Positions 25,385-51,244 of a DNA stretch of 64,000 nt are shown piece after piece. Position 1 is the first letter of the stretch. Each line of letters starts with the position of its first letter. This DNA comes from Saccharolobus solfataricus P2. Its GTDB lineage: Archaea; Thermoproteota; Thermoprotei_A; Sulfolobales; Sulfolobaceae. The stretch lies in the NCBI RefSeq assembly GCF_000007005.1, contig NC_002754.1; one strand, written 5' to 3'. A program made the translations under genes and the position numbers. The notes beneath the pieces are model-generated. The model did no database searches. It worked only from the letters and a program-made list of their open reading frames with translations, and was not told the origin of the DNA.

Positions 25385-26569
25385 GTGCATGTGATAAGGG
25401 AAACATTGAAAGGTGGTAAGGGTGAAGTTATAAAAAACCCTAAGGTCTTTATCGATCCGTTATCTGTATTTAAGGAGATTCCGTTTAGAGAGGATATATT
25501 AAGGGATGCCGCAATTGCTATTAGGTATTTCGTTAAGAATGAGGTCAAGTTTTCGAACTTATTCCTTGGATTAACCGGTACCGGAAAAACTTTCGTGAGC
25601 AAATATATCTTTAATGAAATTGAGGAGGTGAAGAAAGAGGACGAGGAATATAAGGATGTAAAACAAGCTTATGTTAATTGCAGAGAGGTTGGTGGAACAC
25701 CACAAGCTGTATTATCCTCTTTAGCTGGGAAACTAACTGGTTTTTCAGTACCAAAGCATGGTATTAATTTAGGTGAGTATATTGATAAGATAAAGAATGG
25801 CACAAGGAATATAAGAGCAATTATATATCTTGACGAGGTTGACACGTTAGTGAAGAGAAGAGGGGGAGATATAGTTCTTTATCAGCTGCTTAGATCAGAT
25901 GCAAATATATCTGTTATAATGATTAGTAATGACATTAATGTTCGTGATTATATGGAGCCCAGAGTTTTATCATCTTTAGGGCCTTCGGTAATCTTTAAAC
26001 CTTACGATGCAGAGCAACTGAAATTTATTCTTTCGAAGTATGCTGAATATGGCCTAATAAAAGGTACCTATGATGACGAAATATTGAGCTATATTGCAGC
26101 TATTTCTGCTAAAGAGCACGGTGATGCAAGGAAAGCAGTAAATTTGCTTTTCAGGGCAGCTCAGCTAGCTTCAGGTGGGGGTATTATTAGGAAGGAGCAC
26201 GTAGATAAGGCCATTGTGGATTATGAACAAGAGAGGCTTATAGAGGCCGTCAAAGCTCTTCCTTTTCACTATAAATTGGCTTTAAGAAGTCTGATAGAGT
26301 CAGAAGATGTAATGTCTGCTCATAAAATGTATACAGATCTTTGTAATAAATTCAAGCAAAAACCCTTATCGTATAGGAGGTTTTCAGATATCATATCAGA
26401 ATTGGACATGTTTGGGATAGTCAAGATAAGGATAATTAATAGGGGTAGAGCCGGTGGAGTTAAGAAATATGCATTGGTGGAAGATAAGGAGAAGGTATTA
26501 AGAGCGCTTAATGAGACTTTTGAAGATAGTATTAGTATTGGTGATTTTGATGATGTGGGAGAAAATTAA
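25385..26569 (+). CDS. cdc6-3: Orc1/Cdc6 replication initiator (Cdc6-3/Orc1-3)
   Basis: Walker A GLTGTGKT, Walker B YLDEVD, HGDARKA, and a C-terminal wHTH ([10 protein letters not shown]...GRAGG). Adjacent to the origin. Confidence 0.92.
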
Positions 26570-34821: not shown

Positions 34822-34869
34822 TCAGCTGGACTAGGAGTATTCATCCATCATTTACGTCTTCCTCATCAT
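34822..34869 (-). ncRNA. Box C/D methylation-guide sRNA candidate
   Basis: ATGATGA-ggaagacgtaa-ATGA-t-GGATGA-atactcctagtccag-CTGA, overlapping the stop of the NurA-like gene. Confidence 0.7.
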
Positions 34870-35943
34870 TAGCTCTGCTAGCTTATCGTTTATATCTAAA
34901 TAGTTTTCTCTAGCTAAGTTAAATAATAATGCGTATTTCTTTGCATCTTGTGAATTTATCTCCGAAAGTTCATCAGCTAGTTTGTTCAATAACGTAACTT
35001 CTCTAATACTTTGCATAGCCCAAATATTCAAATATTTAATTGGTGTGAAGTCAGGTTCCCTTTCAGCCAGCACATCTATTCTAACTATTGGTGACGTTGT
35101 ATTATATTGGTAATACAGAGAGTATATTGAGAGTGAGTCATTAAACACCTTTTTATATCGATTATAAGCCTTCGAGATTCCCTTAAGATCATCCAATATT
35201 ATCTGATTATTTATTAACGAATCCCAACTTATCCACCCTAGATATACTGGTTTATTAAACTCAGATTTTTCGAGCCTATATTTATACATAATACTAAATA
35301 TAATATAGTTCTCTCTTGCCTTCATCAGTGCGGGATAATTATTTAAAAACTCCTTGATCAATATTCTATGAGAGAAGTTCTTTACTATTCCCACGATTAA
35401 TTTATTCTTACCCTTTAATCTTCTAAGTACTGTAGAACGATATAGTGCTAACTTATCCAGAGATAAGATATTTTCTATCTCAACATCCTCTTCATAATAT
35501 GTTGGTGGATCCACAATAGGTCCATCGATAAATATCACGTCACACTCCTCACACTTCTCTATTAGACTCGTTTCTAAAGTAAGCATAAATAAAATGGATT
35601 TGTTGGATATCACGTTCTTATCGTAGTAATTCTCTATTATCTTGAAATCCTCAGCTATCTCAGATGGGACACTCTTTTTGTCCTTCTTTTTGCCTAAAAT
35701 CTTCACAGCTCTAGCTAGGATAAGGGTTACATCACTTAACTCTATTTCATATTTGCTTCCGTCTACTGCACATGCAATGTGCTCAGAATCTATAATCTCA
35801 TCAAGTATTCCTATTTTTAAATCAATGCTATTTGATATTATATCGTCAAAAATTAAGTTAACTGCCATATTTATCTTTCCTCTCTCATTAACATCTTTGC
35901 TAGCTAACTCATTTACCTTTTTAATAATCTCATTTGTATTCAA
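34852..35943 (-). CDS. NurA-family nuclease (divergent paralog)
   Basis: Acidic motifs CAVDGS and IFIDGP plus VGIVK; in an operon with a HerA-family gene. Confidence 0.82.
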   Translation of the reverse strand: MNTNEIIKKVNELASKDVNERGKINMAVNLIFDDIISNSIDLKIGILDEIIDSEHIACAVDGSKYEIELSDVTLILARAVKILGKKKDKKSVPSEIAEDFKIIENYYDKNVISNKSILFMLTLETSLIEKCEECDVIFIDGPIVDPPTYYEEDVEIENILSLDKLALYRSTVLRRLKGKNKLIVGIVKNFSHRILIKEFLNNYPALMKARENYIIFSIMYKYRLEKSEFNKPVYLGWISWDSLINNQIILDDLKGISKAYNRYKKVFNDSLSIYSLYYQYNTTSPIVRIDVLAEREPDFTPIKYLNIWAMQSIREVTLLNKLADELSEINSQDAKKYALLFNLARENYLDINDKLAELMMRKT

Positions 35944-36628
35944 ACTTTCACCTTTATAGAAATATTTTTCTCAACAAGCATTTTTATAACCTTTATAGAC
36001 TCTTCTAGGTTGTCTCTACTAATCTTGATTTCACCTTTGTCTATTAGTAATATCAATATGCTAATTTCTTTCTCATTTAGATTTATTTTTCTCAATTCAT
36101 CCACGATAATCCCATACAACTCATTAAGGTGTTGTTTAGCTTGTATTTCAACTTCATTTAGCTTAGAGAGTGATCTTTCCTTGGGTATACTAAAAGTTTT
36201 TGCGTCTTTCTGAATTTTAAGGAAGTGATACAGTATTTTAGCATATAATATTAGTCTATTATTTATTTCCTCAATGCTCTTGATTTTCTCTTCTATTATC
36301 TTATTTAGGTCTTGTTCTATATCTTTCTCCAGGCTATCTACTTTACTTTTTATTTTATCTATATATCTGATTATCTCTTCAGCCGAGTTGAGCTTGGTTA
36401 GTTTCTCTATATCCGTTTAACTTCCTCCAGCTTGTCTTCATATTTATTTAATTCGTTTATCTTTTTCTCTAAGGTCCTTAATTTCTTTAGAGACTCCTTT
36501 AGACTTTGTTTAGATTTTTCTAATTCCTCTATTGTCTCGGTAATTTTTCTATCCTCTTCTCTTAGTCTTTCTACATCCAGATTCTGTTTATATTGGGTTA
36601 GTCTTTCCATAAATTCAGCTAAATCCAT
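35940..36628 (-). pseudogene. Coiled-coil protein of about 229 aa split by a 1-nt frameshift near 36415-36418
   Basis: The 73-aa ORF ends AAA CGG ATA TAG. The -1 frame is open from ACG GAT ATA GAG to TGA at 35940, overlapping the NurA-like TTG. The total span of 689 nt is one base short of an intact ORF. Confidence 0.8.
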
Positions 36629-39600
36629 ACTCTTCTAGAACCTCCTTTATTTCTTGAATTAATTGTGTTATTTTTTGTGTATTTCTCTCAACGTTTTCTC
36701 TCAACTTAGGTAATTCTGGACTTATCTTTTCTAGATCATTTACAATCATCTCAATATTATTTAATTGGATACCGACTTTACCTAATGATGCGATTTCCTC
36801 AATTATCGTATCTTTTAACTCATCTCCAGATATTGATACGCCATTTAGTATCTCTTTCAGCAATTTGAATAATATGAAATAAAGGTTTGAGTTATCTTCA
36901 ACGTGTATAGTAGCAAGTAAGTAATCGAGATATCGTTTAAACGACTCTGTTTGTCCCCTCTCATTTATCTCTTGAATTTTCCTCACTAACTTGTCCATTT
37001 GCATTTTGAAGTTGTCTTTAAGTTCATGAATTATCTCATATACCTTCTCTATTTCCTCAATTTTCTCGTTTATCTTTACATGCCTCTTGGCTTTCTCTAC
37101 AACCTCCAATTTTTTGTAGATTTCCTCAACGATCTTGTCTGTCTCAATCACTGATTCTTCGGTCTTTCTTAATAATTCCAAATATATATTCGATAAATAT
37201 AGATAATCATAACATAGCCTTATGTCTTTATTTTCAGTGCAAGATTTCTCATAAGCTTCTATGACCTCTCTCATTTCCTCAAGGCTTCTTATTGCAGCTC
37301 CCCTCTTTTTAGCTGTTATGAAGTACCCATAGGTCGAGTATGGATTATCTAGTTTTTCCTTTATTTTTCTTATTTGCTCGTCTATTTTCAGATAAATTAC
37401 ATCTTTATTTAAATATTTAGCAATTTCGCCACTAACTATTGACGAGTAAACTAAGAAGTCTAAGGTGGGATTTTGTCCAATTTTTTTATCGGGGCTAAAA
37501 ATTTGATACGCAAAGACTAAGGGATTATTTTTATTATCTTTTCTTTTGTTATCTTGTGGACTTACATAATACATTATATAATTAAATACAACCTCCTCTG
37601 CTTCTTGCTTGTATTTTTGCCTAATAAGACCCGCAAACAGCTTAGCGAATGAGGATAACGATTCTCCCGCTAGGTCTTCGAAATCTATGTAATTGGATCT
37701 AATCTTTATTATACGATTACCATAGAAGTAAGTAATAATGTCATCAACAAACGTGTTGGATGTTTCTATATCTTCTAAATGGAACTGCTTACTTCCATAC
37801 ATTCTAAATTTCTCATTAATTATCTCATTTACTTTCTCGAATAACTCATTAGCATTTACCATTTTTATTGATGGGTAAAATATTATCCAATTGAATGATT
37901 GTATTAATCTCTTATTTCTAGGTATGGGAAGTTGGTTCAAGTTAAGATTATCTCTTATTTTTAGCAGTAGGGAGGATATCGAATTTTTCAGATCTCCTAG
38001 TCTTAGTTCTATGGAATCAAGCCTAATTCTACTTTGTCCGTAGATTTTAGAGAATAGTAGATATAGCAACTGTCTTTTCTTTGGTGTGGTCATTTTTAGT
38101 TCGATCAACGGTATTGATAGTCCGTCTAGAGTTTTGGATAGTTCTTCCTTCCTTATTTGAGGCTCTATTAGAATAAGACCGTGAATTAGCTCGTCACTTT
38201 CGTTGATCTCTTTTATTAAGTTCTTAATTTCATCCTCGTTAGCTGGATTTGCCAAAATAATAGTAATTTTCTTATTATCCATTATAAGTTTTAAAAACCT
38301 TATGTAGTCTTTGCTTCTATTTACACTATCTACCTTTATTCCTAGTACTTCCATTAAATATTCTAATGATTCAAGTTCCTTCTCTCTATCTGTAATATAC
38401 GTATTCACGAACTGTAAGGCTTTATCTCTAATTTCTCTTGACTTAAACTCTACTATTAATCCTCCTATATTAGTATTCGCTATGCTCTCAAAAAAGCTCC
38501 AGGATATTGCATATGCATCAGTTTTACCGAATAGTGATAGTTTTTTTACATTCTCCTTTATTTTACTTATATCTATGCTTTCATGGAGTATAGTTTCTAT
38601 ATTGTCGGATATAAATACATGAAAATCGTCTTGATAATATGTTAAAAGAAAGTCCTCAACGTATTCTTGACCTTTAGGGAACATCTCAATCCATTTTAGA
38701 TATGGTATCAGTACCCCTTTTATTACATGACCTTCTAATTTCTTTATGACTAGTTTTTCGTCAGTAAATATTCTGCTCATTAAGACTTTGTATAATTTAC
38801 TTAACTCTTGGGAGTCCATTTCGTTCTCTAATTTTGTTAACATATCTAGTCTAACGGTCTCTCCTTCTGAGTTTAGATTAATTCCCTTATCCGATCTAGC
38901 CAGTTCGTTGAAAATTCTATCTACGTTAGGAAGATTATCGCATACTATATCGTTGAAGAACTTTACGTATTTTCTTCTTTCTTGATCTATTACCCAGTAA
39001 GGCAAATCCATGTACTGTAGTATCTTTAAGTCATTTATGTTAGCCATATTTAGCATACACTTTAACATTAATAGAAACTCTAATTTAGATGGATTTTCTA
39101 TACTAACTTTTCTTATTCTTTCTAGAAGTGAAGGGTAAGTTTCTGAAAATAAGTTATAAATTATGCCTCCAGTTCCAAATATTTTAGAATATGCGCTTGG
39201 GGTCATGGAAAGGTATATTATTGAATTTCCAGTTGAATTAGCTAATTCCTTTACCTTGCTCCAAAAGTCCTTTATCTCGTTTTGATACTCTGCGAAGTAA
39301 TCTACAGAACTTTCCACTTCATCAATAAGGTACACATTATTTTTGAACGTTAACAAATCTTCGGTTCGGCTTAAAAGTTCTACAAAGGGTATCTTTATTA
39401 CATTAATATTTCTATTTTTTGCATATTCCTCAATGATGTCAAGGAACGTACTTTTTCCTTGTCCCCAATCGCCGACAAGCGATATTATTTCTGGGGATTG
39501 TTTAATCTTAGATATCCTGTCTATCTCATCCTTAACTTGCTTGAAAAATCTTAATCTATTTATGTATAATGAGTTCTCTGTAATGCAAGAGAAAATTTGA

Positions 39601-39653
39601 TAGATATAAGAGGAGTCAGATGCTGTTTCGCTTATTCTCTTAGAACAACTCAC
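36615..39653 (-). CDS. Large P-loop NTPase (1012 aa) with C-terminal coiled coil
   Basis: Walker A GDWGQGKST and Walker B VYLIDEVE near the N-terminus; long helical C-terminal region. Confidence 0.8.
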   Translation of the reverse strand: MSCSKRISETASDSSYIYQIFSCITENSLYINRLRFFKQVKDEIDRISKIKQSPEIISLVGDWGQGKSTFLDIIEEYAKNRNINVIKIPFVELLSRTEDLLTFKNNVYLIDEVESSVDYFAEYQNEIKDFWSKVKELANSTGNSIIYLSMTPSAYSKIFGTGGIIYNLFSETYPSLLERIRKVSIENPSKLEFLLMLKCMLNMANINDLKILQYMDLPYWVIDQERRKYVKFFNDIVCDNLPNVDRIFNELARSDKGINLNSEGETVRLDMLTKLENEMDSQELSKLYKVLMSRIFTDEKLVIKKLEGHVIKGVLIPYLKWIEMFPKGQEYVEDFLLTYYQDDFHVFISDNIETILHESIDISKIKENVKKLSLFGKTDAYAISWSFFESIANTNIGGLIVEFKSREIRDKALQFVNTYITDREKELESLEYLMEVLGIKVDSVNRSKDYIRFLKLIMDNKKITIILANPANEDEIKNLIKEINESDELIHGLILIEPQIRKEELSKTLDGLSIPLIELKMTTPKKRQLLYLLFSKIYGQSRIRLDSIELRLGDLKNSISSLLLKIRDNLNLNQLPIPRNKRLIQSFNWIIFYPSIKMVNANELFEKVNEIINEKFRMYGSKQFHLEDIETSNTFVDDIITYFYGNRIIKIRSNYIDFEDLAGESLSSFAKLFAGLIRQKYKQEAEEVVFNYIMYYVSPQDNKRKDNKNNPLVFAYQIFSPDKKIGQNPTLDFLVYSSIVSGEIAKYLNKDVIYLKIDEQIRKIKEKLDNPYSTYGYFITAKKRGAAIRSLEEMREVIEAYEKSCTENKDIRLCYDYLYLSNIYLELLRKTEESVIETDKIVEEIYKKLEVVEKAKRHVKINEKIEEIEKVYEIIHELKDNFKMQMDKLVRKIQEINERGQTESFKRYLDYLLATIHVEDNSNLYFILFKLLKEILNGVSISGDELKDTIIEEIASLGKVGIQLNNIEMIVNDLEKISPELPKLRENVERNTQKITQLIQEIKEVLEEYGFS

Positions 39654-39657
39654 ATTT

Positions 39658-41271
39658 TCACCCTTCGCTTAAAATTAAATCAATTCTTTCCACGTTTCCA
39701 GCGTATGATCCTAACCTAGGATCCCATGGGATTCTTACCAATGCCGGACTTTTCATTATTGACATAAGTCCACTTACTATTACGTATCCAGTATCTAATG
39801 ATGTCAAATTCTTAGTTAATGATTCGGGTAAACCACCTGAAGCGGACATAACATATCTTACGTCTTCATGATATATTCTATGAAAGAAAAAGGTGTTAAT
39901 CATGGATAATACGTATTTATCTATAAATGCTGGTCTTTGACTTACCAGAATTAGAGATGCCCCAAATTTTCTTCCTTGAGTAGCTAGTGTTACCAATACG
40001 TCTTTTGTCAAGTTAGCGTTTACTGGATAATCAATAGAAGGTATGTAGTTCTGTGCCTCTTCTATCACAAATCCCAAAAACCTTTGATTACCGTTGTATT
40101 TGGATCTCGTAAGATAATTAAATATTAATCTAGTTATGTAGCTTACGATGAGTTGTTTCGTAAGGACATCTACTCCTGGTGAACCATCAGCCGAGAAGTC
40201 TATTATTGCTAAACCTCTATTCCTCCAAATCACTTCTAATGTGTTCTCAGTCAAAGATGCAGAAGAGTTGACAAGTTGTAGTCTGCTAATTACTTTGTTT
40301 TTGAATATTTCTAATGCGCTAGCAATTCCCCTAGCAGTACCCGTTGTGATTCCTATATCCTTATTTTGAGCCATCGTAAGAATCTCATTCCTTAGGGTCT
40401 CAATTCCTATTGCACTACCTAAAAGGGTATTATATTCCTTGCTCTCATGGTTTGCTAAAACTTGCTCTAGGAAATTTAGTTGCAGTGTGTTATATGAAGC
40501 CTCACCGTATTTTAGAGACATAATAAATTCTGATAATTCTCTAGGCGTGAATATGGACAAATCTATTGTAAGCTTAATGTCGTTTTGCTCCTTAGGATCC
40601 TTCAATATATACCTCTTTATCCAGCCTCTTCCTTTAGATACTATGTCTAGATTTGTCGAAGCTAAATCTATGTAATCCCCATTCGCATCAATTACAATCA
40701 TCGGTAAGGCCGTGATCTTGTCTCCTATTTTTATGTTAGATAAAAGCTTAATTAAGTATCTCATGTTGTAGCTTTTTCCACTTCCAGTCTCTCCAAAAAC
40801 TCCCATGTGCATTGTTATTGCATTAAGGTCTAACAATAATGGTATTTCAGAACCTGCTAAGGCTCCGTACTCAATTAATCCTTTTTTGTTTTTTATTCCA
40901 TAAAAGGAAAGTAGCTCTTTTTCACTCTTTATTTCTGGTAATCTTCTTACGAAAGAGCCAGGTTTAGGGGTTGTATTATGGTCATATTTTTTTATTAAGT
41001 GCAAAGTTGCTTTTATTATTGTATTCATATCGAGAATTTCATATATCGAAGGTTCTTTTAATATTGACTTAGCTATCTCCCCCTTTTCGTCAAAGAACTC
41101 ATTCAGAAATTCGTAATTTTCAACCCTGACTAGTGAAAGCTTCTCGGAATCATCAACTAATAACAATTGTCCTACGCTTATTTCCTCATCAGCTCTAATT
41201 AGTCCTTGCATTTCATTTGCTTCGCTCTTCTGCAGTACTATTCCTATAATCTCTCCCCTTTCCATCACCAT
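39658..41271 (-). CDS. HerA/FtsK-family ATPase (HerA paralog)
   Basis: N-terminal HAS-barrel-like region; motifs HMGVFGETGSGKS, VIDANGDY, FVIEEAQNY, QGRKFG and SQRP. Confidence 0.92.
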   Translation of the reverse strand: MVMERGEIIGIVLQKSEANEMQGLIRADEEISVGQLLLVDDSEKLSLVRVENYEFLNEFFDEKGEIAKSILKEPSIYEILDMNTIIKATLHLIKKYDHNTTPKPGSFVRRLPEIKSEKELLSFYGIKNKKGLIEYGALAGSEIPLLLDLNAITMHMGVFGETGSGKSYNMRYLIKLLSNIKIGDKITALPMIVIDANGDYIDLASTNLDIVSKGRGWIKRYILKDPKEQNDIKLTIDLSIFTPRELSEFIMSLKYGEASYNTLQLNFLEQVLANHESKEYNTLLGSAIGIETLRNEILTMAQNKDIGITTGTARGIASALEIFKNKVISRLQLVNSSASLTENTLEVIWRNRGLAIIDFSADGSPGVDVLTKQLIVSYITRLIFNYLTRSKYNGNQRFLGFVIEEAQNYIPSIDYPVNANLTKDVLVTLATQGRKFGASLILVSQRPAFIDKYVLSMINTFFFHRIYHEDVRYVMSASGGLPESLTKNLTSLDTGYVIVSGLMSIMKSPALVRIPWDPRLGSYAGNVERIDLILSEG

Positions 41272-41293: not shown

Positions 41294-41884
41294 TTAAACG
41301 ATTAAGCTTCTGGGATTAGATAATGAAAGGTTTCTTATTACATTGGCTATAGTTTTGAAGGCCAATCTACCATATGGGTAAATTGTTATTTTTAAATGTG
41401 AGATTTCAGCTGCACCTTTCACTATTTCATAGTGATGCCTAGGGAGTATACCTATTAATCTCTCGTGTAATTTACTAATTTTTATAAGGGGCTTCGTTAA
41501 TAACTCAACGAACTCTTCTTTTTCCTCTTTGCTCATAAGCGCTGGGGGGTAATCGTAATTGTTAAAAGGATAGCATTCCTCTAACTCTCTAGGCACTAAT
41601 AGCATTGGTTCGGATACTGAATATACTTGTACTTTCTCCTCTAAATTATATTTCTGTAATATGGCGTAGGCTATTTTGTGTGTTGGTGATGACGAGTAAG
41701 GTTTAACTACAGTACAAGGTAACAACAACGCAATCTCCTTATTTGAACTCCAGTTCTCTAGAAAGTAGCGATGCCATCTCATCACCACTGGGTGTCTGAA
41801 CAGATCGTCAGTATTATCTCTTTTCGATATTCTAGTAAAGTCAGGCTTAAGGTATTCATATAGTTGTTCACATGCAGAGCTCAT
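41294..41884 (-). CDS. DUF5591 (ArcS/TgtA2-associated domain) protein
   Basis: Motifs LLLPCTVVKPYSSSPTH and SEPMLLVPRELE..YP...YD. Confidence 0.78.
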   Translation of the reverse strand: MSSACEQLYEYLKPDFTRISKRDNTDDLFRHPVVMRWHRYFLENWSSNKEIALLLPCTVVKPYSSSPTHKIAYAILQKYNLEEKVQVYSVSEPMLLVPRELEECYPFNNYDYPPALMSKEEKEEFVELLTKPLIKISKLHERLIGILPRHHYEIVKGAAEISHLKITIYPYGRLAFKTIANVIRNLSLSNPRSLIV

Positions 41885-42740
41885 TTACCTCCTCCTCTAT
41901 CTCATCTTCCGCGAAAGTATCTAGTTTTTTAGAATATCTTATCAAAGGATTGTTGCTTTCATATTCTGAATTCAAGAGCACCCAAGCGTTGATTAGACTT
42001 CTGTCTATCCAATTGTCGAATCTAATTTGAAATGGGTAGTGAGTTTTATCTAAAAATGATAATAAAATCTCTAGTTCCTCTTCGCTCGCTCTTTTAGTGC
42101 CCCACACTATTTTCCTATTTCCTACGTATCTTTCTCCTTTACCGGGTATAATAACCATACCATGTATGCCCTTAACTCTGTAGGTCGAAGTATCCACGCT
42201 GTCGGCGTTGAAGTAGACTTTTCTCATGAAAGGTGATCCTGCACCTAAGACGTGTATTTTCCCCTTCCATAATTTCCTAACTAAATAATATATTGCAACC
42301 GCAAGTTTTTTGTTACCGCTCTTGTTTAGGGTAGGAGGGACGATCCCACCAAAAGCTACTAGGTCCGTATATTGGGAGTAGAAGTCTATGGATTTCTTTA
42401 TTGACTCAGGATCATAAGCGTGTATGACTGGTACTATTTTCTTATCGAAAACTGTGTATAAGTACTCGAAGTATTTGTAATTCAATTCTGATGGCTTATG
42501 GCAAGGAATTGATGGTATATCAAGGCTCATATATTGTGTGGCATCTAGTATTTTATACTTCTCAACTACTTTTTCTATTTCAACTTTTATTCCTCTAACC
42601 ATTATTTGGTATCCTCCAGAGTCTACCCATGTCTCATTTTCCCAAGATGGTCTATCCCAGTTTAATTGGTTAATCATTAATGGTTGTTTAAACGTCCAAA
42701 CTGGGATTTTCAGATCAGGTATGCCTAGTATTATCTTCAT
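41868..42740 (-). CDS. tRNA-guanine transglycosylase-fold protein (DpdA-like, no Zn site)
   Basis: Motifs DSGGYQ, MSLDIP, PVIH, AFGG, HVLGAG and DSVDTS match TGT catalytic positions. There is no CxCxxC motif. Confidence 0.82.
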   Translation of the reverse strand: MKIILGIPDLKIPVWTFKQPLMINQLNWDRPSWENETWVDSGGYQIMVRGIKVEIEKVVEKYKILDATQYMSLDIPSIPCHKPSELNYKYFEYLYTVFDKKIVPVIHAYDPESIKKSIDFYSQYTDLVAFGGIVPPTLNKSGNKKLAVAIYYLVRKLWKGKIHVLGAGSPFMRKVYFNADSVDTSTYRVKGIHGMVIIPGKGERYVGNRKIVWGTKRASEEELEILLSFLDKTHYPFQIRFDNWIDRSLINAWVLLNSEYESNNPLIRYSKKLDTFAEDEIEEEVNELCM

Positions 42741-42845
42741 TTTTCCTGATATTGGTATTACTATTGGGTTAAATCTTGATTATATAATAATACTACTTGT
42801 TTTCTTACGTTCTCGCTAATGGAAAATGCAATTTCGTATATTACA

Positions 42846-46998: not shown

Positions 46999-47663
46999 AA
47001 ATGAGCTGGATAAGAGATACTAGTTTTCTTATGGAGTGTGTTAAGAATGAGAACATAAAGATTGAAATCAATAGTTCTAATTATTTCATGTCCTTTAATC
47101 TCCTTAACGGAAAATATAATTTGTCGTTATTTTCATCGCATGATATTAGAATATCATATGATGGTAATAGGCTAATCGATATGCATAACTTGAGAGTTTT
47201 GAAGGATAATGAGGCTAGGGTACACATTTCTAATATGATTCGTAATATCAAGGTAAATATGTCAAATGAAATAAACAACCTCGCTATAATGTATAACATT
47301 CCAGTGAAAATTCTATATGAGAATCTAGAAGCTATATTCAATCTTGATTTCTCGCTATTAAGCTGTTTAGATTACGGCCTAGATTATTTTCTACTTCATT
47401 TGACCAATAACTTTGCAAAGCAATCGTCTCAATTTGAGGTAGTAAAGAAGTTGAAATTCATACTAGGAAATGAAAGGGGTTGTATTAAGGCTATTCTAAG
47501 CTTATCTAACACTTATGAATCGGATTCTTTTTTATTTTCGAGTGATTGTATAAATTTTCAGACTGACGTTAATGCATTCTCTAAATTCTTGAGAGATTAT
47601 AGAACACTCAATGTGAAATATATAGAAGTTATAGATTATCTCAAACAAAGATTGCCTCATTAA
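46995..47663 (+). CDS. Hypothetical protein, 222 aa
   Basis: Overlaps the tenA stop; no family recognised. Confidence 0.7.
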
Positions 47664-48370
47664 CTAGAGTAGTTCTTTATGTCATATCTGATAAACTCAA
47701 GACCTAATTTTTGTAATAATTCTCTAGCATGGATAGTTAAATCCGGAGCTACGAGTATTCCTCTTATCTTATCTCCTTTTATTTCTCTCATGTGTAAGTA
47801 GTATCTATACAATTGTGATATTGCGTTTAGTTGAGCTTTGCTTCTCTTTACTTCAATTATTACAAAATTACCTTTTTTATCTAATCCTATTAGATCTATT
47901 TTCCCGTATGGGGTATTATACTCTCTAGTTAATGGGACAAATCCTTCTTCGATCATACTGGGATTTTGGATAATAGTATTTACGATGTCGATCTCTCTTC
48001 CTTTAATCGTGAAATCTCCTTCCTTTACTTCAGCTGAAGTTATGTAAAATACCTCTTTCAAATCTATCTCTATTACCTCTTTTGGTCTATTTCTTTGAGC
48101 CACTATCTTTAATGGATAATCGTTCATTATTTCTATTTTAGTACCTGGTGGTTGCCAGTTTAAGGGTTCCCTTTTAACGCTTTCGTGTATTATCACTGTA
48201 CCATCTGGTTTCAATATTATCAACCTAGGTGATTCTGATGCAACTGATTCGGCTCTTCCCTTATAATTAACCTTACATGTAGCAAAGATTACTATAAGTT
48301 CTCTATAAATTCGGTCGGTTAAGAAGGAATAGATTTCCGTGTTGCTAGGATTTAGTAGTACTGAATACAC
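47660..48370 (-). CDS. nucS: Mismatch-specific endonuclease NucS/EndoMS
   Basis: Motifs [24 protein letters not shown] and GKIDLIG..IIEVK. Confidence 0.93.
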
Positions 48371-50191: not shown

Positions 50192-51244
50192 ATGTTATGG
50201 CTTCTAATGACAACCGGGAAATGCAACCTTAAGTGTGATTACTGTGGAGGGTCTTTTCCAGATAATGTTGTACCTTACGGTATTAAATATGATATTAATT
50301 CAGTCAAAAAGCTCATAGAGAAAGATAAGGATTCCACAATAATATTCTACGGTGGTGAACCATTGCTTAATTATAAATTTGTAATGGCCGTTTTAGATAA
50401 TGTAAGAGCGAAGAGATATGGGATACAAACTAATGGTATTGCAGTAAGGCTCCTTCCGGAAAGATATTGGAGGAAAATAAATGTAGCCTTATTATCTATA
50501 GATGGTAGAGAGGAAATTACTAACAAGCATAGGGGTAAAGGTATCTATAAGGCGGTTCTGCGATCGGCGAAATATCTTAAGGATCTAGGTGTTGAAACGA
50601 TAGCTAGGATGACAGTTACGCAGGATACTGATATCTTTACCGATGTTATGCATCTAATAGATTTAGGACTATTTGATAAAGTGCATTGGCAATTAGATGT
50701 AATATGGAGTGAAGAATGGGATTTCAAAAGTTGGTCTTTTTCATACTTGAATGGGATAAAAAGACTAACTGACTACTTCCTTTCAGAACTAAGAAAGGGA
50801 AGAGTAGTAAAAATAATACCCATATTAGGTGTAATTAGCGCTCATTTCTTTGAGGGATATAAGGGTTCTCCATGCGGTGCTGGATATTCCTCAGTTACCG
50901 TTACTCCCGATGGGAGAATACTTTCTTGTCCGATAGCGGTAAGAGAAAAATGGGCTGAGTTAGGCAACGTAAATTTAGGGTATAGGCTCTTAGAAGATCC
51001 ATTACCGGATGATTGTAAGAGATGCGAGTTCAAACGATACTGTGGTGGAAGATGTTTATATGCACAAAAGGAGAGATACTGGGGGGAGGAGGGGTTTAAG
51101 GCTGTGGATGAGGTTAATAAGGAATATCTTCGTACGGTACTCTCAATAATACCCGAAATTGAAAGACTTATCAGAGATGGCTACATAAGACTTAGTGATT
51201 TGTACTACAATCCAATACTTGATTCAACTGAGATCATACCTTAA
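50192..51244 (+). CDS. Radical SAM/SPASM protein (archaeal AF0577-like family)
   Basis: Motifs CNLKCDYC and FYGGEPL; SPASM cysteines CGAG, CPI and [14 protein letters not shown]. Confidence 0.88.

Follow-up and report, generated by a model that had tools for sequence, protein, structure and literature searches.

We describe a six-gene operon of the archaeon Saccharolobus solfataricus P2 that may encode a DNA-marking system coupled to its own restriction machine. The operon lies on the minus strand of a 64,000-nucleotide stretch of contig NC_002754.1, hereafter the window, which has a G+C content of about 33%. Its genes encode, in order, a DpdA-like protein of 290 amino acids (aa), ArcS2, a HerA-like ATPase, a 1012-aa NTPase, a protein of about 229 aa, and a NurA-like nuclease. 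All six are tightly spaced, with overlaps or gaps of at most 22 nucleotides (nt) throughout. We propose, giving this reading about an even chance of being correct, that the first two genes form a Dpd-like 7-deazaguanine DNA-marking module, that this module is coupled to a HerA/NurA restriction module, and that the marking genes have been captured by Sulfolobus viruses. 7-Deazaguanines in DNA are known from bacteria, in which Dpd islands are found, and from viruses. We know of no archaeal cell that carries 7-deazaguanine in its DNA. The original prediction for this locus, which was made from the sequence, concerned the first two genes. The four downstream genes, which it had not taken up, are in our opinion the more interesting part of the locus.

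The 290-aa protein (41868..42740, minus strand) is predicted to have the fold of a tRNA-guanine transglycosylase (TGT). The similarity is remote, and the assignment was made because profile, fold, and motif conservation agree. The protein contains the motifs WVDSGGYQ at residues 38-45, SLD at residues 72-74, and DSVD at residues 180-183. A search of 5.8 billion protein sequences yielded 149 homologues, and D40, D74, and D183 were invariant in an alignment of 23 homologues that are 36-80% identical to the window protein. In a family profile, these residues aligned with D95, D130, and D249 of the archaeal TGT (arcTGT) of P. horikoshii (1iq8, E=6e-6), and the alignment spanned arcTGT residues 92-321 only. 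The same profile matched Salmonella DpdA (7ui4) at E=2.4e-4 over 90 residues only. A search of the PDB with the single sequence returned nothing meaningful, and the profile was needed. The AlphaFold model of the protein had a predicted local distance difference test score (pLDDT) of 90. Its best PDB matches were arcTGT (1j2b/1iq8, E=1e-9), bacterial TGT, DpdA 7ui4, and Cap10. When the model was compared with a library of viral structures, a rudivirus protein was the best match (template modelling score, 0.87), followed by phage DpdA proteins including those of nt-1 and phiST.

The Zn site of the TGT family is missing from the 290-aa protein. Its only Cys residues are C80 and C289, there is no CxCxxC motif, and the Zn-ligand His of arcTGT ('LHNLWV') is replaced by Ile ('LINAWV'). 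The protein stops at residue 290 and has no PUA, C1-C2, or other C-terminal domain. These results agree with the original prediction that the TGT catalytic Asp motifs are kept while the Zn site and the PUA domain are lost. General family models recognize the protein poorly. Pfam gave no TGT match at E<=0.1, the NCBIfam arcTGT model scored 18.6 bits (E=5e-4) against a cut-off of 350, and the NCBIfam DpdA model NF041059 gave no match. Identities to arcTGT, bacterial TGT, and the phage DpdA subfamilies were 10-16%, too low for a reliable tree, and profile and fold comparisons did not place the protein in any bacteriophage DpdA subfamily.

The second gene (41294..41884, minus strand) overlaps the first (42740..41868) by 17 nt and encodes a 196-aa protein. 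It matched Pfam PF17884 (DUF5591, the C1 catalytic domain of ArcS) at 2e-19, with 70 bits against a cut-off of 26, and it covered positions 261-409 only of the NCBIfam ArcS model. A. fulgidus AF0587 (PDB 2q07) was matched at 1e-8. The PC-X3-KPY-X2-S-X2-H motif is intact at residues 56-69 (P56-C57-x3-K61-P62-Y63-x2-S66-x2-H69), and P56, C57, K61, and P62 were invariant among 17 ArcS2 homologues. The N-terminal TGT-like, C2, and PUA domains of full-length ArcS are absent. The partner is thus a stand-alone ArcS-type domain carrying PC..KPYS.S.TH, just as had been predicted. We found no RaSEA-type radical SAM partner in the operon. A previous report showed that the substrate of ArcS can be as small as the preQ0 (7-cyano-7-deazaguanine) nucleotide (PMC11298593). 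Therefore, the shape of tRNA is not needed for ArcS chemistry.

Since both proteins descend from the arcTGT and ArcS families, we considered whether they form a split or alternative archaeosine (G+) system for tRNA, in which the TGT-like part and the C1 domain act jointly as ArcS. Split forms of ArcS and arcTGT exist, and database names for the first protein say tRNA transglycosylase. However, the pair has no PUA, C2, or C3 domains, the 290-aa protein retains the catalytic Asp residues expected of a true transglycosylase, the operon is shared with a DNA translocase and a nuclease, and homologues occur in viruses without tRNA genes in that region. Saccharolobus also already has arcTGT and Gat-QueC for G+. 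A canonical arcTGT has been reported in S. islandicus together with FolE, QueD, QueE, and Gat-QueC (PMC6884629 Suppl. Table 2), and G+ has been reported in tRNA of S. acidocaldarius and S. tokodaii (PMC11298593). Therefore, preQ0 is available in these cells, and the tRNA route needs neither ArcS nor this pair. We consider a tRNA role very doubtful. The complete tRNA archaeosine route of the host genus, which does not use ArcS, is in line with the non-tRNA substrate that had been predicted. A non-tRNA substrate, most likely DNA, fits the evidence best, as suggested by the double-stranded DNA (dsDNA) translocase and DNA nuclease partners and by close homologues in dsDNA viruses, one of which carries a 7-deazaguanine.

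These viral homologues were identified by tblastn against phage and archaeal virus genomes. The 290-aa protein was 70% identical to its counterparts in the Sulfolobus tengchongensis spindle-shaped viruses STSV1, STSV2 (STSV2_15), and STSV4. Rudivirus homologues were 28-40% identical and were found in the Sulfolobus islandicus rod-shaped viruses SIRV1-11 (35-40% for the SIRV proteins), Beppu, and Stygiolobus rod-shaped virus. STSV2_15 overlaps STSV2_16 like the gene pair in the window, and STSV2_16 is 61% identical to the window DUF5591 protein. The STSV TGT-like protein is also Zn-less, and the STSV ArcS2 motif is intact. Previously, the STSV1/2 proteins were listed as DpdA and ArcS by Hutinet 2019 (PMC6884629), and the name ArcS2 for the second STSV protein comes from Cui 2023 (PMC10516641). 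The two-step modification was originally put forward as possibly new, and this part of the claim cannot be kept, since the pair itself is already known from viruses.

The chemistry of the viral pair has been described in part. STSV2 virion DNA contained dCDG (2'-deoxy-7-carboxy-7-deazaguanine) at 0.04% of G, and not the expected 2'-deoxyarchaeosine (dG+) (PMC10516641). DpdA2 of Vibrio phage nt-1 alone produced 2'-deoxy-7-cyano-7-deazaguanine (dPreQ0) in E. coli plasmids, and addition of ArcS2 led to small amounts of dG+ (PMC10516641). Where the base in STSV2 comes from, and how dCDG is formed, was left open by the authors (PMC10516641). The second step had been predicted to be addition of an amino acid or an amine. 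This is not yet supported by the published viral data. STSV2 DNA had dCDG, phage nt-1 ArcS2 gave dG+, and no lysine adduct is known from DNA.

In a maximum-likelihood tree, the STSV proteins nested in the Saccharolobus side of the Sulfolobaceae clade, and the rudiviral proteins formed a long branch within the Sulfolobales clade. This nesting points to gene exchange between Sulfolobales hosts and their viruses. STSV (DpdA and ArcS2) and rudiviruses (DpdA only) have plausibly captured marking genes from Sulfolobales hosts to pass as self. The viruses carry the marking genes only, as expected if the mark shields DNA from a host machine.

Cap10 (9ntn) was among the structural matches of the 290-aa model (E=2e-5). 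Cap10 acts on a CD-NTase in type IV cyclic oligonucleotide-based antiphage signalling systems, and the 290-aa enzyme could likewise deazaguanylate a protein and thereby switch the HerA/NTPase/NurA effector on or off. The two large ATPases in the operon could be targets of such regulation. However, arcTGT and phage DpdA match better, a QueC-like Cap9 partner is not present, and ArcS2 acts on preQ0 substrates at the nucleoside level. In addition, presence of the viral orthologue goes along with base modification of DNA. We therefore regard protein modification as improbable.

The four downstream genes encode a putative DNA-processing machine. The third gene of the operon (39658..41271, minus strand) encodes a 537-aa DUF87 ATPase that matched PF01935 at 3e-37 and the PADLOC HerA models at 1e-29. 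Its Walker A (GETGSGKS at 160) and Walker B (FVIEE at 401) motifs were identified, and it scored 99 bits against the NCBIfam HerA equivalog cut-off of 800, as a paralogue of the repair HerA. Genes for mre11 and rad50 were not found in the operon. The fourth gene (36615..39653, minus strand) encodes the 1012-aa P-loop NTPase, with an AAA+/ORC-Cdc6/STAND/KAP-like N-terminus and a large helical C-terminal part. It has conserved Walker A (GDWGQGKS at 61) and Walker B (VYLIDE at 107) motifs and weak matches to KAP_NTPase and BrxC_BrxD (E=0.008 for BrxC_BrxD). Its AlphaFold2 model (pLDDT 86) resembles AAA+, ORC/Cdc6, and STAND ATPases via the N-terminal part only. This family was seen in Sulfolobales only, and the window copy is 100% identical to a Saccharolobus solfataricus protein.

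The fifth gene (35940..36628, minus strand) encodes a coiled-coil protein of about 229 aa, for which Pfam gave no family. In the window it is present in two reading frames. Three-frame translation, tblastn, and a DNA alignment against S. islandicus showed that it is split by a single 1-nt gap at about 36415/36416. The S. islandicus counterpart is intact and encodes 229 aa (locus L053:9315-10004), and the gap may be a real mutation or an assembly error. The sixth gene (34852..35943, minus strand), the start of which overlaps the stop of the fifth, encodes a 363-aa NurA-like nuclease. It matched PF09376 at 3e-17 and has an invariant D61 and D140-G-P within the NurA core motifs.

The operon is conserved within Sulfolobaceae. 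All six genes occupy the same position on the chromosomes of S. islandicus, S. caldissimus, Acidianus brierleyi, and Sulfuracidifex tepidarius, flanked by a DUF255 thioredoxin-like gene on one side and usually by a Band_7 gene on the other. The same genes were found by tblastn and clustering of open reading frames (ORFs) in four loci from metagenome-assembled genomes (MAGs; L002-L005). In look-ups of exact clusters, S. shibatae and each of the sequenced S. islandicus strains listed had the proteins. The TGT-like gene was present in every genus in which the 1012-aa NTPase was found.

Across Sulfolobaceae genera and in every S. islandicus strain, this is a core locus with conserved synteny, and the operon may instead serve housekeeping genome maintenance. 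It would then encode a second HerA-NurA end-processing machine, with base exchange used for repair or for marking of the chromosome, for example near an origin, and not for defence. DNA end resection is the process for which HerA and NurA are best known, and an Orc1/Cdc6 gene lies about 9 kb away. However, the TGT-like gene is carried by two unrelated virus families of these hosts, which points to a role in conflict. The combination of a large STAND/KAP-like NTPase with HerA and a nuclease is the pattern of anti-invader capture systems (PMC12839542). The canonical herA-nurA pair is also kept in the cells, and the window HerA reaches only 99 bits against the cut-off of 800. We regard housekeeping as unlikely.

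We next considered how the TGT-like gene is associated with HerA and NurA outside Sulfolobales. About 70 loci were examined, and the ORFs of 48 genome loci were clustered after iterated hidden Markov model searches. A HerA-like gene adjoined the TGT-like gene in Njordarchaeota (L028/L046), a Desulfurococcales MAG (L029), Thermoproteaceae (L034/L037/L038), and Caldivirga (L040-42). The order at L029 was TGT, DUF5591, NurA-like, HerA, and then a 1478-aa NTPase. A NurA-like gene stood beside the TGT-like gene in Stygiolobus (L007; hhalign probability, 84%).

The association extends to remote relatives. A profile search of 1.84 billion cluster representatives gave 340 clusters at E<1e-10. The nearest 35 or so lacked CxCxxC, and the next layer, of 280-400 aa, had CxCPxC and passed the general TGT superfamily model. 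These Zn-containing proteins are closer to arcTGT than to bacterial DpdA, and within the phage collection they match Sulfolobus viruses only. Four remote Zn-containing relatives, which are 24-30% identical to viral homologues, had DUF87 nearby in 3/4 of the cases, DUF5591 in 2/4, and NurA in 2/4. Their gene orders were TGT, DUF5591, NurA, DUF87, and a large NTPase (L058); a Vut_1/YhhQ-family transporter, TGT, a DNA methyltransferase, HerA, and NurA (L059-61); TGT and DUF5591 (L062); and TGT, an ABC-type ATPase, a 1448-aa protein, and DUF87 (L063). The large proteins of L058, L063, and L029 are mutually homologous, with AAA/STAND/KAP-like N-termini. The neighbourhood thus recurs with varied gene order and varied HerA subfamilies, and this is our main argument that the enzyme and the machine work together.

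It could be argued that an orphan DNA-modification pair stands by chance beside an independent HerA-NurA cassette. The two are at separate loci in Sulfurisphaera and Aramenus, and in S. caldissimus a small gene is inserted between the TGT/ArcS2 pair and the HerA-NurA cassette. However, the adjacency recurs in at least 8 separate lineages with differing gene orders and HerA subfamilies, which chance does not explain, and genomes with unlinked modules still contain both. We therefore think that the modules are very unlikely to be unrelated.

The gene for the transporter at L059 (L059:2792-5024) is two genes from the TGT gene. It clearly belongs to the Vut_1/YhhQ family, and we take YhhQ itself to be a member of Pfam Vut_1. 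YhhQ is the preQ0 transporter (PMC6884629). The recurrent neighbourhood, including this transporter, supports 7-deazaguanine as the substrate. In rudiviruses, the TGT-like gene is directly preceded by the gene for a 399-aa membrane permease (SIRV2 ORF310 and ORF399, L064:1942-4082). This permease was tested as a member of the YhhQ family, and only a weak AA_permease_2 match was obtained. Taken together, the rudiviral permease and the metagenomic Vut_1/YhhQ transporter near TGT-like genes give a hint that the base substrate is imported. An N6/N4 DNA methyltransferase, a DUF6884 protein, and a 443-aa protein without family assignment are also encoded at L059:5021-8202, L060, and L061, which suggests that L059-61 are composite modification and defence loci.

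Based on these results, the Dpd-like reading can be set out as a mechanism. The 290-aa protein would be a DNA-guanine transglycosylase of the archaeal Zn-less branch that is called DpdA in Sulfolobus viruses. By the double displacement of TGT and DpdA (PMC10164549), D183, as the nucleophile, would expel guanine and become covalently joined to the DNA, D40 would serve as the general acid/base, and recognition of the guanine edge would fall to D74. The preQ0 that the cell already produces for archaeosine in tRNA would thereby take the place of guanine in dsDNA. ArcS2 may then add an amine to the nitrile of the inserted base, giving an amidine (dG+ or an amine/lysine adduct), or, via hydrolysis, an amide or carboxylate (dADG, which is 2'-deoxy-7-amido-7-deazaguanine, or dCDG). 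Genomic context suggests that the large NTPase and the small protein would control the HerA-like hexamer and the NurA-like nuclease, which would thread unmarked DNA and break it down. The overall logic would be that of Dpd restriction-modification with a different restriction machine. The analysis shows the fold, the catalytic residues, the structure and synteny of the operon, the recurrent association of its genes, and the nesting of viral homologues among those of hosts. DNA as the substrate, preQ0 as the incoming base, the ArcS2 product, and the restriction role of HerA/NurA are the parts of this mechanism that we infer.

Several observations weigh against this mechanism. The structural Zn site, which is conserved in all TGTs and bacterial DpdA, including across the DpdA family (PMC10164549), is not present in the 290-aa protein, and the DpdB ATPase, which bacterial DpdA requires, was not found among the operon proteins. 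T. kodakarensis ArcS is inactive without RaSEA (PMC11298593). PADLOC recognizes neither the 290-aa TGT-like protein nor ArcS2. The modification of STSV2 DNA is very low (0.04% of G), dCDG is not readily explained by DpdA or ArcS2 chemistry, and the STSV2 host S. tengchongensis is said to have no preQ0 genes (PMC10516641). DNA modification of Sulfolobales chromosomes is unreported in the literature.

The distribution of the genes adds to these points. The TGT-like gene stands solo in Ignisphaera and Pyrobaculum. In Ignisphaera and related loci (L010-L027, L036, L043), it lies between genes for the tetraether lipid synthase Tes and ribonucleotide reductase, with no DUF5591, HerA, or NurA nearby, and its role there may differ. 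The radical SAM gene beside the Ignisphaera homologues was suspected to be RaSEA and was rejected, because it encodes Tes, and its position next to them reflects housekeeping synteny. In Sulfurisphaera and Aramenus, the cassette of HerA, NTPase, small protein, and NurA is at a separate locus, and the TGT/ArcS2 pair stays at its usual place. Therefore, the modules are separable, yet both are kept. Finally, the operon is a vertically inherited, syntenic core locus and not a variable defence island, which a housekeeping role would fit equally well.

The low level of modification in STSV2 also bears on another possibility, in which the transglycosylase itself is the effector. HerA and the NTPase would bring it to invading DNA. 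Its action there, whether removal of guanines, their replacement, or the formation of covalent or abasic intermediates, would be followed by degradation of the DNA by NurA. The STSV2 level falls far short of what blanket protection would need, and the association with HerA/NurA is tighter and older than that with ArcS2. However, viruses would gain nothing by carrying an effector against themselves, and every characterised DpdA is a self-marking enzyme. We give the effector role little credence.

We compared the operon with known systems. DpdA and ArcS2 of STSV1/STSV2 share with the window pair the 70%/61% identity, the overlapping two-gene layout, the Zn-less TGT-like protein, and the intact ArcS2 motif. 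However, the STSV pair stands alone among viral genes, whereas the window pair lies on the chromosome, where genes for HerA, the NTPase, the small protein, and NurA follow it in the operon. With the bacterial Dpd system (DpdA/DpdB/DpdC and DpdD-K), the operon shares a proposed logic, in which a TGT-family enzyme puts preQ0 in DNA, the nitrile is converted, and linked genes restrict unmarked DNA. In contrast to Dpd, searches with Pfam, NCBIfam, and PADLOC found no homologues of the ParB-like ATPase DpdB, of DpdC (DUF328), or of DpdD-K in the window operon. The window protein also lacks the Zn site and the specific insertions of bacterial DpdA, the second enzyme is ArcS2 and not DUF328, and the candidate restriction part is HerA/NurA. 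With the archaeal tRNA enzymes arcTGT and ArcS (and RaSEA), the window pair has in common the catalytic core residues, the C1 motif, and preQ0 as the likely substrate base. It differs from them in having no Zn site, C-terminal domains, PUA, or RaSEA, and in scores far under the equivalog cut-offs.

The downstream genes invite two further comparisons. HerA/FtsK-anchored capture and capture related to bacteriophage exclusion (BREX-related capture, BRC) (PMC10853773, PMC12839542) share with the operon a HerA translocase, a large AAA+/STAND-type NTPase, a small accessory protein, and a nuclease. BRC sometimes has a TGT homologue, which has been proposed to mark self DNA (PMC12839542). BRC is defined by PglZ, DUF6079/BrxC, an active STAND (BrxB-like) NTPase, and DUF4007 alongside HerA, with GNAT and TGT optional. 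Unlike BRC, the operon has no PglZ, DUF6079/BrxC, DUF4007, or GNAT, its nuclease is NurA, ArcS2 is present, and the lineage is archaea-only. Dpd and these capture systems are the nearest concepts in the literature, and of the components that define them the operon contains HerA and a TGT-like protein only. The canonical archaeal HerA-NurA system, which works with Mre11-Rad50, also combines a DUF87 ATPase with intact Walker motifs and a NurA-domain nuclease in one operon. In contrast, the window HerA is a paralogue (99 bits vs 800), there is no mre11/rad50, and the 1012-aa NTPase and the link to TGT/ArcS2 are additional. We found no description of the archaeal six-gene operon in literature searches, in which some older key papers were not covered. 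As far as we found, the coupling to HerA/NurA at the operon level is undescribed.

A broader form of the Dpd-like reading is that the chromosomes of Sulfolobales, and more widely those of many Thermoproteota and Asgard-related archaea, carry a 7-deazaguanine derivative as a self mark, and that the HerA/NurA/STAND machine reads the mark and destroys unmarked invaders. This would be a new archaeal class of restriction-modification, and we advance it tentatively, as doubtful. The mark may be a base so far unseen in DNA (preQ0-amine or preQ0-lysine amidine), with dCDG as its breakdown product. If true, chromosome marking would account for the DpdA genes of rudiviruses and bicaudaviruses. S. solfataricus and every sequenced S. 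islandicus strain carry the locus. These are the main genetic models of Crenarchaeota, so that direct testing is possible in them.

If the marking genes are coupled to HerA/NurA, a role would be assigned both to the 1012-aa orphan NTPase and to the second HerA-NurA pair, which is conserved. Counter-defence would then explain why rudiviruses and STSV carry 'tRNA transglycosylase' genes, which have long been noted, and the coupling would bear on the origin of dCDG in STSV2 DNA. A restriction machine based on an end-resection motor would also join the modification-dependent defence systems. If the coupling is false, the pair is a cellular member of a published viral enzyme pair, which would be an ordinary result.

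The sequence around the operon was also examined. The 56-bp divergent intergenic region upstream of the first gene (42741..42796) is a candidate promoter, in which an A/T-rich TTATATAA box lies about 40 nt upstream of the first ATG. The Orc1/Cdc6 gene mentioned above (Cdc6_C, Cdc6_lid, AAA_22) is at 25385-26569 on the plus strand, about 9 kb from the end of the operon, so that the operon may be located near a replication origin. A gene for the mismatch endonuclease NucS/EndoMS (NucS_N and NucS_C) is found at 47660-48370 on the minus strand, about 5 kb upstream of the operon, and is syntenic in other Sulfolobaceae. Proteins encoded at about 31-56 kb of the window and selected ORFs elsewhere were scanned, and no preQ0 synthesis enzyme was found among them. 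The sole radical SAM gene in the scanned 31-56 kb, at 50192-51244 and about 7.5 kb from the operon, was suspected to encode QueE and was rejected as a member of the rSAM_AF0577 SPASM family.

Apparent bacterial homologues of the TGT-like protein (Streptomyces, Planomonospora, and others) were rejected, since they come from rudivirus DNA that contaminates the assemblies. The contaminated assemblies were L022, L023, L044, and L045 (Streptomyces gamaensis, Planomonospora alba, Paenochrobactrum glaciei, and Nocardioides koreensis), and L023:7000-13000 was 99.6% identical to SIRV3. This contamination is the source of the protein name 'MULTISPECIES [Bacteria]'. A contig labelled Thermogutta sp. MAG23 (Planctomycetota; L008) bears an archaeal DUF5591-TGT-HerA-NTPase cluster. 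It is probably mis-binned, since its TGT-like protein groups with Conexivisphaera-like archaeal sequences.

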